43,586 nucleotides of DNA from Guillardia theta CCMP2712 (taxonomy: Eukaryota; Protista; Cryptophyta): contig NW_005434430.1 of NCBI RefSeq assembly GCF_000315625.1, positions 1 to 43,586 of the forward strand. The letters run 5' to 3'. Below, piece by piece: positions 2,975-37,854 of the stretch (position 1 is its first letter; each line of letters opens with the position of its first letter). The position numbers and the translations under genes are program-made. The notes under the pieces were generated by a model. The model saw only the letters and a program-made list of their open reading frames with translations. It ran no database searches and was not told the origin of the DNA.

Positions 2975-3123
2975 TATTATTATTATTATTATTATGTGAG
3001 TTTATTAGAATGCTAGGATGTTGCTCGGCCTCGTTGTGGGCTTTTGCAATTTGATCCTAGTCTAAAGAGGCGCTCGAGCACTGGGAGTACACGGCCTACA
3101 ATGCGAACCCTGCTTCTGAGGCG
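2975..3123 (-). mobile_element. 5'-truncated copy (3' terminal ~150 bp) of the telomeric element
   Basis: Matches 235-383 including the (TAT)n tail; flanked by CCCTAAA tracts at 2917-2974 and 3124-3145. Confidence 0.85.
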
Positions 3124-3144
3124 CTAAACCCTAAACCCTAAACC

Positions 3145-3889
3145 CCGGCCCTTAGTAAGAGCAGCCGGCCCTTAGTAAGAGAGCCGGCCCTTAGTAAGAC
3201 AGCCGGCCCTTAGTAAGAGAGCCGGCCCTTAGTAAGAGCAGCCGGCCCTTAGTAAGAGCAGCCGGCCCTTAGTAAGAGCAGCCGGCCCTCAGTAAGAGCA
3301 GCCGGCCCTTAGTAAGAGCAGAGCCGGCCCTTAGTAAGAGCAGCCGGCCCTTAGTAAGAGCAGCCGGCCCTTAGTAAGAGCAGCCGGCCCTTAGTAAGAG
3401 CAGCCGGCCCTTAGTAAGAGCAGCCGGCCCTTAGTAAGAGCAGCCGGCCCTTAGTAAGAGCAGCCGGCCCTTAGTAAGAGCAGCCGGCCCTTAGTAAGAG
3501 CAGCCGGCCCTTAGTAAGAGCAGCCGGCCCTTAGTAAGAGCAGCCGGCCCTTAGTAAGAGCAGCCGGCCCTTAGTAAGAGCAGCCGGCCCTTAGTAAGAG
3601 CAGCCGGCCCTTAGTAAGAGAGCCGGCCCTTAGTAAGAGCAGCCGGCCCTTAGTAAGAGCAGCCGGCCCTTAGTAAGAGCAGCCGGCCCTTAGTAAGAGC
3701 AGCCGGCCCTTAGTACTACTTGAAGAGCAGCCGGCCCTTAGTAAGAGCAGCCGGCCCTTAGTAAGAGCAGCCGGCCCTTAGTAAGAGCAGCCGGCCCTTA
3801 GTAAGAGCAGCCGGCCCTTAGTAAGAGCAGCCGGCCCTTAGTAAGAGCAGCCGGCCCTTAGTAAGAGCAGCCGGCCCTTAGTAAGAGCA
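3145..3889. repeat. Subtelomeric minisatellite, 20-bp unit CAGCCGGCCCTTAGTAAGAG, about 37 copies
   Basis: Head-to-tail, nearly perfect copies with a few 18- and 22-bp variants and one insertion near 3715; no spacers. Confidence 0.95.
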
Positions 3890-23195: not shown

Positions 23196-24063
23196 GTTGT
23201 TCCTGATCGACCTAGAAGGACAAACAAGACATTAGCAAATACCATATCGGGGGTATTGAGAGGAATCTGACAAAAAAAAACCAACAGTGCGGGCTCGAGG
23301 TAAGCTAGCAAGAAGATCGGTTTTCATCCTGATCCTACAGATTCGAACTCGATTTGCTGTCATAAGGAAGGGTCCAAGTCTTTGGTCTACTTCTGCTTGT
23401 GAATTCACCAGTCATCCCTCTCATGACAGTTCTTAAGCTATTTCTTTTCTCAATCTTGATCATCGTCACCGTGCAATTTATCGTAGAAGTTTGTCTGTCA
23501 ACCTTCTACTTTCATCTCACGTCTGGAATCTGCTTTGTTCCATGCATTCCTCGCGTTCATGCTGCCATACTACCGAAAGCAAGAGCATGAGCATGGATAC
23601 CGAGGAAAGCTCTTCTTCCCTCTCCGTGCATCCTCCCCGCAATTCACACAAGAAACATTTTCCACCCCACCGCTTCTGTACCCTACCCCTACCGCATCCT
23701 ATTAGTTGAAGAGGAATGAACCGGTACTAGAAAGGATCTGTACCACCCGTCATGGAATGCTCCCTTACAAGAAAACGTTTTTGAGATTAAAAAAAGTCCG
23801 ACCCGTACCCCTAGCAAGACCATAGGTACACAGGGGTAGGTTTATATTCGCTCTTTCAAGAGAAGGTAGGGTGTTCAAGAAATATTGAAGCGGTGGGTAT
23901 AAATCGTGATGTTTCAGATGGTGGGGGTAGTGGCTTCGGGGGTGGGGGTCATGTCACAACAATGGGGCTCTAATATAACTTGGGGAATAAAAACTTGGGG
24001 AACAATCAGATCAGATCACCCCCACCCACCCCCACTAGGGGTTTTACGGATGTCCCCAAATGT

Positions 24064-24222
24064 CATTTAATAGATAAACGCCACGAATCTATCTACCACG
24101 GGTACTCTCCCTCATGATGTGACGGAATATGTGAATACCCTTCTGAACGACGAACTAAGTTTTCGCACAGAACTGCCGTCGTATGATTGAGAGCCGCGAC
24201 TCTCCGTCATACAACGGCAGTT
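24064..24222 (-). ncRNA. Putative Fanzor omegaRNA scaffold
   Basis: Long hairpin at 24171-24222, stem 24133-24140/24100-24107 and hairpin 24071-24095. Each contains G-U pairs on the minus strand that are A-C mismatches on the plus strand. Lies between the stop codon and the element end. Confidence 0.7.
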
Positions 24223-24435
24223 GTTTTTTTTGCCAAATTGTCTTCGGATGTTGTTGGAGCCTTACATGAATCCTACCAAATGATGCCAGTCAGTCACTTC
24301 AATGATCACATGTCGTAAACATCGGATCATAATGGAGGCAGGCACCGGGCAGGCAGGCAGGCAGGGAATTAGGCATCGAGTCCCGAGGGACGCAGTCTGG
24401 GTAGGGAGGGGGCGACAACAATCATTGAATTCACC

Positions 24436-26499
24436 TCAGGGGCGACGTAGGTGATTCGGTCTTTCAGGAAACACATTGAAACAAGTGAGTATATTCAGTG
24501 CAGCATTCAAGTCCCTGGATTTGATCGGCTTTCCTTTACAGCTGTCACGATAACAGTTAGATGAAAAGGTGAATTACAGGAGTATACAAAACTTGACATT
24601 ACCTCGATGATCTGCAAAATTTCAATCCTCGTACTTCACTTTTCCTTGTTTTCAACCTACAGGTCTCGTCTGGTTCTTTCCCTGTATTTTCAATCCGTCG
24701 AAGCACATCGAGCTCAGAACCACAATCGTTACAGCACTTGGTAGTACGGTATTCGTCAACATCTACGACTCTGTAGTGATTCTCGAATCTTCTTCTTATC
24801 CACCTGACCGGTACAGGCCTTTCTCCTCGACGTCCTGTAGACGGGAACCTTGCATTTCCATATGCGATAACAGGTTCTATTTCTCCCTTTCCTTTCATTG
24901 TACGGATAAACCTGTCGACTGACTTTCGTTTCGAAATGTAGATGTCGAATTTCATCCTGGCGTATTTTCGCTTTGAATAATGCGAAGTTAACTCCTCCCA
25001 ATGACTTGTAACTGCAAGAAGATAGTCTTCGAATCTTGATAGACTGCCGCCAGACTTACTCGAGAACCCCTTGAGATAGTGTAATGTCGATTGAATATCT
25101 TGATCCCACGTCTTTCTTTTCTTTTTATTGCGATTCAGATGTGACTCGTGATAATATTGTTTTCTCGAAAACTGAAATCTTTTTCTGATTATTTGTTGAT
25201 CATCTCTGAATTGTTCGACGGCCGATATAATGACGCTCCTCCCAGGGTCGATCGCAATTACCCTTGGGCAATTTTTACATTCTTCGATCTCTCTTTGGTA
25301 TTCTGAATTTTCATGTAATACTTTGTATGATATTGATATCTTCTTCGCCGATTTCCGTTCAGCCCTTTTTCTATCGGCAAGCCATTTGGTAGTGCGCAAT
25401 GAAGGTTCCTGTTCGAGTCCATCGATTGTTTTGACAATTAACGTGAAGCGAAAACAAACCGATACACCGTCTGTCGTGATACTTGTAATCTCCTCTCTCT
25501 GATCTCTGAACAGATTCGAACAGTCGAAAATCCTTCTGAAATTCTTAGAGTTCTCCAAAGTTTGATCTATTCTCATGAACGATTTTTTATCTTCTCCCGG
25601 TTTCAAACTGTTCGCTTCTTTCAAAATGTAATACATCACATCATTATCGATTGTTAGATGTTTTCTGCCGAATTTCGACATTGGTGCTGCCTTGAATGTT
25701 TTTTTCGAGAGACCACGATCTTCGACAAGAACTTCAACATGAACATGTGTGTCTCGATTATCTCAAACAGATTTTTCTGCAACCTATGATCAAATTTGTC
25801 ATATTTGAAACTAAAAAGATCTTCGTCCCCCGATAATCCAATTAGTTGTTTCATATGGTCGATGAAGGTTCCTATCTGCTGTGAATTATTCCTGTTAAAC
25901 ACTTCTGTCTTCAACTCGTAATCTTTCCTTTGAAACAATACATTCTTCACGTCTTCGATTTCTTGCTGATGGTTAATATGTAACTCTCCTTTGCAGAATT
26001 CGGCAATGAACTTTTCCAATCGGTTTGTAAAATTTGCTTTCAGGTCTTGGTAGAAATTCGTTCCATATTGATTTGCAGCGAATACAATAGCTTGCGAGTC
26101 TCCTCGAATTCTACATAAATCAACGAAAAGATGTCTTTTCTCTGACCAGAAACGTTGTAGAGTTGGATACTTGTTATCTGTACGGCTATGTTGTTCCATT
26201 CCAAGTGTAAAAACATTCCAGAAAAAGGTCGATTTGGCTCTCTTGATTTCATCCACTACATATCGTAAATTCCCTGTATCCCTGCCCCATATCAGAAAAC
26301 AGTTGAATATCATACTGCCTCTTGATGTGATCTGACTGATATGTAATACCCATCTGTCGATCACGTCTAAAATCGATCTGTTCTCTACCTTGAGTCTCGA
26401 GTATAACCCACATTTGACGACTCTCGTGAATGGTTTTGAATAACTTATTTCTTGACCGTTGTCTGAATCATCTGTAATTCGTTTTCTCTTCCTCGGCAT
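24436..26499 (-). CDS. Fanzor1: Fanzor1 (eukaryotic TnpB-like RNA-guided DNA endonuclease), ~667 aa reconstructed; frameshift at 25699-25705, intron 24542-24602
   Basis: NLS MPRKRKR. RuvC-I VIAIDPG (Asp 25249-25247). IAYGNARF, then VDEYRTTKCCNDC (Glu 24754-24752 plus a Zn-finger half). RGLKFCRSS/SC. After splicing, RuvC-III SRDLNAALNI (Asp 24513-24511) and terminal ERPNHLRRP*. Confidence 0.92.
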
Positions 26500-26747
26500 G
26501 TTATAGTATGTTAGTCTGGCGAAACCATGTTAGATAGCAGGTAGTCACTACATTTTTTTCATTACCATCGTTTCAGTGTATTGTCGGACCGCAAACTCTG
26601 TAATGGCGGGAAGATGAAACGAGCAGCCACAAACTTTCCGTCGGACTCCGGGAAGGCGGGAAGATTTTTTTTTCTTTTTTAAGACCCTCATACAGCCCCA
26701 TTGGATGGGTGATTGAAACCTATCAATGACCCCTGTCATGCTGGTCC

Positions 26748-26767
26748 AGGACTCCTTCGGGAGTCCT
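26748..26767. other. Perfect subterminal hairpin AGGACTCC-TTCG-GGAGTCCT at the Fanzor left end
   Basis: 8-bp perfect stem overlapping the inner edge of the inferred terminal repeat. Confidence 0.85.
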
Positions 26768-27220
26768 TTTGTCGATTAAAGGTTAAGCCAGTCACTGAGT
26801 GACTTTCCTGCCGGCCCCGCCGGGCGGCCCGACTGTCAAGCCAGTTTGACGGTGACCGTCTGACTCGGAATGAAGATGCAGGTGGCAGTCAAAACCATGT
26901 AGCGACGCCAAAGTCAAATGCAACAACTTCCAATCATGCTCAAGGTGAAGACCACAGATATTCAATGCTGGCTTAATCGCTTCTGCAGTGCTATTCACTG
27001 CTGACATGCTCGTGTTTTGTGTTATGGTGTCCTTACATGTCATCTGATACTTTACAAGGTGCATCGAGAACAACATGCGAGGCTCGCCCTGCTCGCGTTG
27101 TTGGCGGCTAGACAGGGAGGAGCTTTGTGTGTACAATGGCATGGAGCTCATCGTCGCAGATCGAGGGGGGCAGGGGCAGATGCACCTGATGGCGGATGAG
27201 AAGAGGTGGGAACGTTGCAG

Positions 27221-36824: not shown

Positions 36825-37854
36825 GGCTACTACCGGCAAGGAAACGCTGCCATGTCGCCAGTCCCACTCAGTACCGAGGTGTCGGGCCGCAAAAAGAACA
36901 GTGTTCGTAACTGCCCGTAACGTTTTCATTTTTCCGTTTCGAATGTAACGGGTGCTTCGGTCAAGATTTAAAAAAACTTTATTGAGTCTGTACCAGAGTT
37001 CTCCTTAAAACAATTTTTGAGCTTCATATGCTTTAGGAAGTGTACCGTATTTGGAAAATCTTAAAATAGTTTTAAAACTACGGCCTTGGGGTGGTGGACT
37101 CAATGATTGAGGTGGTTCAAGTACCCCTACCCACATATCAGATGATATTTGATCCTAGTTTGGGGGGTAATGTGTCTTCAAATGGGGTGGTATTGTTATT
37201 TGAAAGACAGGGGTGGGGTACTTGCGCGTGGCGCGGCAATGGATCGACGGTGAGTGAATGAGAGCGCAGAACAAGGGAGAGAGAGGAAGGAGAGGTAGCG
37301 ACGCCGGCGAACGGAAGGATGGGATAGGAGGGAGGAGGGAGGAGGGAGGAGCATGTCGAAAGGGTGATTGAGAAGATTACGAAGAGGATAAATCGAAGGA
37401 ATGTTCGAGAAAGAAAGGAACTTTTACAAGCAGGAGATGTAACACGGCAAAGAACATCGTATAAGAGCGAGTTGTAGTAGGATGATCGAGACAGAATGTC
37501 CTAGACCATAGTAAGCTGCGATGAGAGGTATGGAAGTGGAGACCGAGGATGTGCCAGTCAGAGAGGTACACTTCGCCTTCGAATGTTTTGGATTTTCAAA
37601 CATGATGATGGCAAGGTAAAGGGTGGGGCGTGGAAGAGTGCAAGTCTCAATCAGATAGTCGTATGTGAGCAGTTTCTCTTGAGAGGCAACGAAGTTGTTT
37701 CTTCGAAGTTTGAAACTTGATAAACATGGTTTCTTCACGACCCACTAGACGACTGAACGACTGTAGAACTCACTCCAATCCTTGTGACGATGTACTGAAC
37801 ACGCGGAATTCAGCTTAGGTGGAAAACCCAAACAACAAGAATCTCGAGGAGGGG

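Follow-up and report, generated by a model that had tools for sequence, protein, structure and literature searches.

Does the run of hairpins that lies 3' of a Fanzor-type gene in the cryptophyte Guillardia theta CCMP2712 form the scaffold of a guide RNA for the nuclease encoded beside it? The question is raised by a stretch of 43,586 nucleotides (assembly GCF_000315625.1, contig NW_005434430.1, positions 1 to 43,586), referred to here as the window, in which a preliminary description made from the sequence had proposed a candidate omegaRNA on the minus strand. Fanzor nucleases, which correspond in eukaryotes to TnpB and Cas12, attract practical interest as compact genome editors; to our knowledge, only a few Fanzor guide RNAs have been defined experimentally. 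The answer favoured here is that the block of hairpins at 24222-24071, together with the TTAA at 24070-24067, is likely to be the omegaRNA scaffold of a Fanzor1-type nuclease, the gene of which resides in a non-autonomous DNA transposon of 2.7 kb with TTAA on both flanks. This candidate scaffold is probably a further member of a system already known, and the locus does not alter present views of how Fanzor systems work.

The gene that precedes the block is of the Fanzor1 type and is read from the minus strand. Its first exon (24603-26499) encodes the N-terminal half of the protein, RuvC-I, RuvC-II and the first half of a zinc finger, and the translations of the open reading frames place the RuvC-I aspartate in IAIDPG and the RuvC-II glutamate in VDEYRTTKCC. 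These motifs belong to a minus-strand ORF of 360 aa, which carries IAIDPG for RuvC-I and VDEYRTTKCCNDCG for RuvC-II plus the zinc finger. A 61-nt intron with GT..AG borders (24542-24602, minus strand) lies inside the nuclease domain, and its joint, 24541->24603 (CT..AC on the plus strand), is found in two contigs of the RNA record X8. Beyond the intron the frame continues as ...FCRSSSCKGKPIKSRDLNAALNI...RRP*, which is RuvC-III. The second exon (24436-24541, minus strand) completes the zinc finger with its second half, encodes the RuvC-III motif SRDLNAALNI and closes with the TGA stop codon at 24438-24436. The D-E-D triad of RuvC, with a zinc finger (TNB) inserted after RuvC-II and before RuvC-III, can be followed through IAIDPG, VDEYRTTKCCNDCG, FCRSSSCKG and SRDLNAALNI, and in the family alignment D417, E582 and the Cys residues are invariant.

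The raw ORFs gave no match in Pfam, and the identification came by way of the motifs, sequence matches to PDB entries and homologues. Among solved proteins, the window's protein matches SpuFz1 (8GKH, E 5.1e-7) and PpFz1 (9CF0, E 6.6e-6). Its database homologues carry PF07282, a domain to which the window's own protein shows a weak match, below the cut-off. Among the homologues recovered, the closest named relative is P0018 of another cryptophyte, Hanusia phi. The family is absent from the G. theta loci file and protein tables of Saito et al., which were searched with staggered 9-mers and peptide words.

The copy of the gene in the window does not have an intact frame. Compared with contigs L004 and L005 and with all contigs of X1, X8 and X13, it has a 2-nt insertion at 25727-25726, which shifts the frame and splits the gene into ORFs of 281 aa and 360 aa. 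Either the frameshifted copy is a pseudogene that has kept its RNA block intact, or the window contains an error of assembly at this point. An intact sister gene product is P0014, a 632-aa ORF that is 100% identical over the query and was recovered with a homologue query extended by 14 codons. As the nuclease gene of the window copy is frameshifted, any RNA made from this copy would need protein from intact sister copies.

The gene and the block are part of one mobile element of 2,712 bp (24071-26782), which on the minus strand begins with CCTTTAATCGAC... and ends with ...GCGTTTATCTA. Two independent contigs that carry P0014, L004 and L005, match the window with 99% identity over the stretch from 26787/26790 to 24067, and their flanks are unrelated to it. 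In the DNA run X1, word depth rises from 71 in the flank (23700-24044) to 645-1000 within the element, a ratio that corresponds to about 9-14 near-identical genomic copies; the window itself holds no second copy. The same run yields a collapsed repeat contig that begins at 24068, and loose ends with differing sequences at 24066-24068. Position 24071 is the last base common to the three copies (window, L004 and L005), after which come TTAA and then unrelated flanks. On the left side, the target-site duplication (26783-26786, minus strand), which is also the candidate TAM, reads TTAA in the window and in L005 and TTAT in L004. On the right side it occupies 24067-24070 (minus strand) and is expected to form the last 4 nt of the scaffold. 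TTAA is present on both sides of the element in the window and in L005. The preliminary description had the hairpin block stop at the inferred end of the element; the final hairpin does stop on the last base of the element, and the end itself is at 24071, followed by the TTAA, rather than at 24064 or 24045.

Several other features of the element can be recorded. The comparison of its ends revealed no convincing inverted repeat, and there is no transposase gene inside the 2,712 bp. At the left end a perfect hairpin of 8 bp, AGGACTCC-CGAA-GGAGTCCT, is found 20 nt inside the element (26762-26743). Short direct repeats of the CTTCCCGCC type occur at 26595-26665 in the 5' untranslated region, in which the window copy has a 9-nt insertion (26654-26646). 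This insertion, and a run of A8 instead of A9, are the other differences of the window copy from the other copies. L004 and L005 have their right flank in common and differ in their left flanks, which reflects either a chimeric assembly across the repeat or insertion into another repeat. A Helitron was considered and rejected, for neither the ends of the window element nor its TTAA duplications fit the Helitron pattern (5'-TC...CTRR-3', with insertion at AT).

The block (24222-24071, minus strand) lies on the sense strand 3' of the gene, the stop codon of which is at 24438-24436, and consists of four consecutive hairpins over about 155 nt. SL1 (24222-24171) is a hairpin of 21 bp, made of 15 bp, a 2x2 internal loop and 6 bp, with a CGCG loop and two G-U pairs. 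SL2 (24171-24142) is short and imperfect, has 11 pairs in the consensus fold and is the least certain of the four. SL3 (24140-24100) has a basal stem of 8 bp and a weaker apical stem. SL4 (24098-24068, core 24095-24071) is a terminal hairpin of 10-12 bp, with a 3' arm that reaches exactly to the final base of the element. The minus-strand minimum free energy fold of 24235-24068 (ViennaRNA) contains 58 pairs, 8 of them G-U, and the same four hairpins, at -67.9 kcal/mol. Ahead of the block is a linker of 50 nt (24223-24272, minus strand) that belongs to the last exon and ends in an A8 run. The three stems named earlier, at 24222-24171, 24140-24100 and 24095-24071, are all present on the minus strand with the sequence of 24222-24071 as it had been written out, and the A8 run (24224-24231) is likewise where it had been reported in the window copy; the other copies carry A9.

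The structure of the block is beyond chance and specific to one strand. In 24040-24235, the minus strand folds at -72.7 kcal/mol (z = -5.8), a stability that none of 200 dinucleotide shuffles reached, and the plus strand folds at -56.4 kcal/mol (z = -3.3 against shuffles). Folding of both strands had been proposed as a check on the preliminary description, and for the block alone it comes out clearly: the minus strand, at -67.9 kcal/mol, is far more stable than its own plus strand at -51.0 kcal/mol. The block also ranks first of 1,280 GC-matched windows of 155 nt (40-52% G+C, both strands, entire 43.6-kb window), with -67.9 kcal/mol against -60.3 kcal/mol for the runner-up. The runner-up is a plus-strand fold at 37076-37230. 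A further argument had been drawn from four imperfect positions that are G-U wobbles on the minus strand and A-C mismatches on the plus strand. These positions are real (24213/24180, 24199/24194, 24135/24105 and 24089/24077), and between 4 and 8 positions favour the minus strand against one that favours the plus strand. As statistics, this asymmetry of the wobbles is weak to modest; it counts as a single sample because the copies of the block are all identical.

The same identity limits what the copies can say about conservation of the fold. All 55 of the 55 block pairs are invariant across the window, L004 and L005, and the genomic copies have no variant letter in 24068-24246; the copies are too alike to show covariation. 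The sole natural variant occurs in L004, where 6 nt are inserted at the apex of SL3 without a change in fold energy. When a covariance model derived from the three copies was applied to loci of relatives that are 31-40% identical (L006-L010, at 35%, included), it detected no related block, which is not surprising because Fz1 scaffolds differ widely past SL1 (Xu et al., PMC11423790). The 3' flanks of the distant relatives L001, L003, L006 and L007 have modest or GC-driven structure and give no independent support. In metagenomes, scans by protein and by a 22-nt word of SL1 returned no match. Rfam assigned the block to no family at the gathering threshold, and at a permissive threshold it returned only generic miRNA-precursor noise (22.9 bits vs a cut-off of 100). 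No tRNAs were found.

Two of the relatives deserve a description of their own. L006:1099-3027 is a second Fanzor family in a metagenome sample, with a protein (P0015) of 642 aa that is 35% identical and no intron at RuvC-III. Downstream of it, 3108-3257 folds at -45.5 kcal/mol in the sense direction vs -28.7 kcal/mol, and there is no TTAA within the contig. In L001:40-2803 the Fanzor protein P0002 (31-32% identical) is encoded head-to-head with a Tc1/mariner-type DDE_3 transposase, near helicase genes; this locus is probably of a giant-virus or similar context.

RNA records add a second intron and point to transcription of the region of the block in the sense direction. A 162-nt intron (24434-24273, minus strand) with GT..AG borders begins 1-2 nt past the stop codon, and its joint, 24271->24434 (CT..AC on the plus strand), is found in two contigs each of X8 and X13. 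Since the X8 and X13 records are assembled contigs without strand information, their strand and continuity are inferred from splice-site polarity. Both joints, 24541->24603 and 24271->24434, have minus-strand polarity and are absent from the DNA run X1. The unique flank of the window has zero depth in X8 and X13, hence their contigs are not bulk genomic DNA. Contigs that retain the region of the 162-nt intron unspliced are present too. Because this intron lies just past the stop, splicing brings the end of the coding region to about 50 nt from the hairpin block, which in the spliced RNA starts 52 nt past the stop codon. One X8 contig of 403 nt covers 24274->24066 and runs on for 193 nt into a different flank, which suggests that a transcript of another copy crosses the block and the end of the element. 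The raw-read RNA run X21, of which 6% was read and the library of which is presumably long-RNA, covers 24666-25760 and leaves 24045-24660 uncovered except for one read. Neither a discrete small RNA nor the ends of RNA molecules were detected in X8, X13 or X21.

The transcripts also redraw the upstream limit of the candidate. The preliminary description had extended it over 24064-24330 and included a further hairpin at 24302-24330. That stem exists, with 6 bp and a 17-nt loop, and lies inside the spliced 162-nt intron, so it is not part of the scaffold. The omegaRNA reading is supported for the strand, the position and the element end, and is not supported for 24232-24330, a stretch made up of linker and intron.

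Three other readings of the block (a 3' untranslated region, a DNA-level end structure and a small-RNA precursor) are doubtful even when taken together, and each accounts for less of the anatomy than the omegaRNA reading does. In the first, the block would be no more than a structured 3' UTR of the usual kind, which serves the stability, 3'-end formation or translation control of the Fanzor mRNA and has no use as a guide scaffold. The block is indeed within the last exon of a spliced mRNA, and the distant relatives show modest 3' structure only. There is, however, no reason for a UTR to stop its structure to the base at the boundary of the element while the transcripts appear to run on. Moreover, the guide scaffold of every characterised Fanzor and TnpB is found in exactly this place (PMC10432273), and the size and the four-hairpin layout match the omegaRNA of GtFz1 (PMC11423790). 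An ordinary 3' UTR is therefore an unlikely account of the block.

The match to known systems can be followed case by case. The omegaRNA of GtFz1 has 150 nt and four stem-loops (Xu et al., 2024, PMC11423790), and the TAM of this nuclease is 5'-TTAAN (Saito et al., 2023, PMC10432273). The window block is alike in that it lies on the sense strand at the 3' end of a Fanzor1 locus, has about 150 nt and four stem-loops, and has a last helix directly beside the candidate guide; the final 10 nt of the published scaffold likewise pair with a segment further inside and make the closing helix at the guide junction. The TTAA on either side of the window element agrees with the published TAM, TTAAN. In Fanzors generally, the 5' target-site duplication is read as part of the TAM, and in solved structures the 3' duplication is inside the omegaRNA scaffold (2026 review, PMC13565253).

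The likeness has its limits. That the window protein is GtFz1 itself was considered and ruled out, as its N-terminus and its scaffold are unrelated to the published ones. The window protein has no PDB match to GtFz1 at E<=1, whereas SpuFz1 and PpFz1 do match, and its third catalytic residue is the canonical D, where GtFz1 has N. The RNA of GtFz1 overlaps the last 17 codons of the gene, whereas the window block begins 214 nt past the stop in DNA. SL1 is 7 bp in all three solved Fz1 RNAs (PMC11423790), whereas the first hairpin of the window block, as provisionally delimited at its 5' side, has 21 pairs, and no 7-bp equivalent of SL1 was identified. Finally, GtFz1 loci are reported without inverted repeats or a link to a transposase, whereas the family of the window has clear TTAA duplications.

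By sequence, SpuFz1 is the closest solved protein (8GKH, E 5e-7), and the element that carries it is comparable in other respects. Spu-1 of Spizellomyces punctatus is a multicopy element of about 2.1 kb with a single Fanzor gene, the scaffold extends across its right end, and 14-15 nt of the flank serve as the guide. The SpuFz1 scaffold differs in having 75 nt and two stem-loops within a terminal inverted repeat of 30 nt, with a TA duplication and CATA as the TAM. The window element, in contrast, is without a clear inverted repeat and its gene has introns. The TnpB elements of the IS200/IS605 group, for example ISDra2, also have the scaffold at the right end with a guide from the flank, and their TAM is the transposon target motif beside the left end. 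Unlike the window element, they are prokaryotic and have neither introns nor a target-site duplication, their RNA, which has a pseudoknot, overlaps the 3' end of tnpB, and TnpA moves the element in the form of single-stranded DNA.

With regard to the transposon, Fanzor genes in piggyBac elements are recorded in Repbase, and TTAA duplication is typical of piggyBac and Kolobok (PMC13565253). The window element resembles such non-autonomous Fanzor elements in its TTAA duplication on both sides and in lacking an internal transposase gene (PMC13565253). The CCC...GGG inverted termini of piggyBac are not evident in it, the ends being CCTTTAATCG... and ...GTTTATCTA.

The ends of the element lead to the second of the other readings, by which the hairpins are DNA-level features of the right end (subterminal sites, or a cruciform or hairpin) for a transposase acting in trans and have no role as RNA. 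The block is located at the very end of the element, the left end likewise has the perfect 8-bp hairpin (26762-26743), and SL1 is a near-perfect palindrome of 52 nt that folds on the plus strand too. Hairpins at the ends of IS200/IS605 elements do serve transposition. DDE transposons that duplicate TTAA, however, recognise inverted repeats rather than four different hairpins over 155 nt, and the two ends of the window element are unlike each other. The stems are better on the strand of the gene (-67.9 vs -51 kcal/mol), where G-U pairs stand opposite A-C on the other strand, and the region appears to be transcribed in the sense direction. A purely DNA-level role is accordingly judged decidedly unlikely, and both roles coexist in TnpB systems, so that a role in DNA would not exclude an omegaRNA.

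The last of these readings, that SL1 is a substrate of the host small-RNA machinery (a precursor of hairpin-derived siRNA, or one resembling a miRNA precursor, with silencing of the element family as its effect), is highly improbable: the length and near-perfect pairing of SL1 suit Dicer-like substrates, the only Rfam matches are to miRNA precursor families and the element has both sense and antisense transcripts, yet those matches are far below threshold and meaningless at 22.9 bits, and the reading accounts for one of the four hairpins and explains neither the position at the end nor the strand bias.

If the block is an omegaRNA scaffold, as preferred here, the anatomy suggests how the system may operate. 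The promoter of the element would make a single sense transcript, from which the intron past the stop codon would be removed, so that the end of the coding region comes to lie about 50 nt from the scaffold, and the transcript would continue beyond the end of the element into host DNA. The Fanzor protein would bind the hairpin scaffold, and some 15-20 nt of flank after the TTAA (24066 downward) would be retained as guide. With the scaffold block reaching to the right-hand boundary of the element, the candidate guide would come from the flanking host DNA AUGACAUUUGGGGACAUCCG (24047-24066, minus strand), which is assigned by position only and with a length taken from other Fanzors. The complex would then cleave a site made up of TTAA and the flank behind it, that is, the donor site left empty after precise excision, and repair from a filled copy would restore the element. 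The RNA of the window copy could be used by protein from the intact sister copies.

Two details of the locus add to this scheme. The 162-nt intron separates the coding region from the scaffold, and splicing may for this reason set whether a transcript becomes mRNA or omegaRNA precursor. A second TTAA, the presumed TAM, stands at the right junction of an occupied site, so that the nuclease could cut beside a resident copy; with TTAA at both junctions, a TTAA TAM alone would not protect an occupied site. That the guide RNA derives from a spliced transcript, with splicing choosing between mRNA and omegaRNA precursor, and that the nuclease also cuts beside its own resident copy, is a tentative proposal with a small chance of being right. 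Cutting beside the resident copy would give the nuclease a role other than the simple restoration of empty donor sites.

The locus offers a candidate scaffold with exact limits (about 155 nt and the TTAA), TTAA as the predicted TAM and, in P0014 joined to the last exon, an intact protein of 666 aa. These parts belong to a family that differs from GtFz1, the characterised enzyme, and that has the canonical D-E-D triad; with them the system is directly testable. A Fanzor is here also tied to a transposon that duplicates TTAA and has well-defined ends, in contrast to the published GtFz1 loci, which are without a recognisable transposon context.

A few observations on the RNA records stand apart from these conclusions. 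X8 and X13 share a loose end at 24158, and they also share a non-canonical skip of 48 nt (24202-24251), in which the A-run is lost together with the 5' arm of SL1. The end at 24158 and the skip could be deletion copies, artefacts of reverse transcription at the hairpin, or products of processing.

Joints with GT..AG borders on the plus strand were recorded as well, at 24484->24542, 24871->24940, 25007->25246 and 25296->25362, in RNA contigs and in raw reads. In the raw reads that carry these joints, the first mates are all on the plus strand. The joints between 24484 and 25362 look like spliced antisense transcripts over the Fanzor coding region, and such transcripts may regulate a system of this kind.
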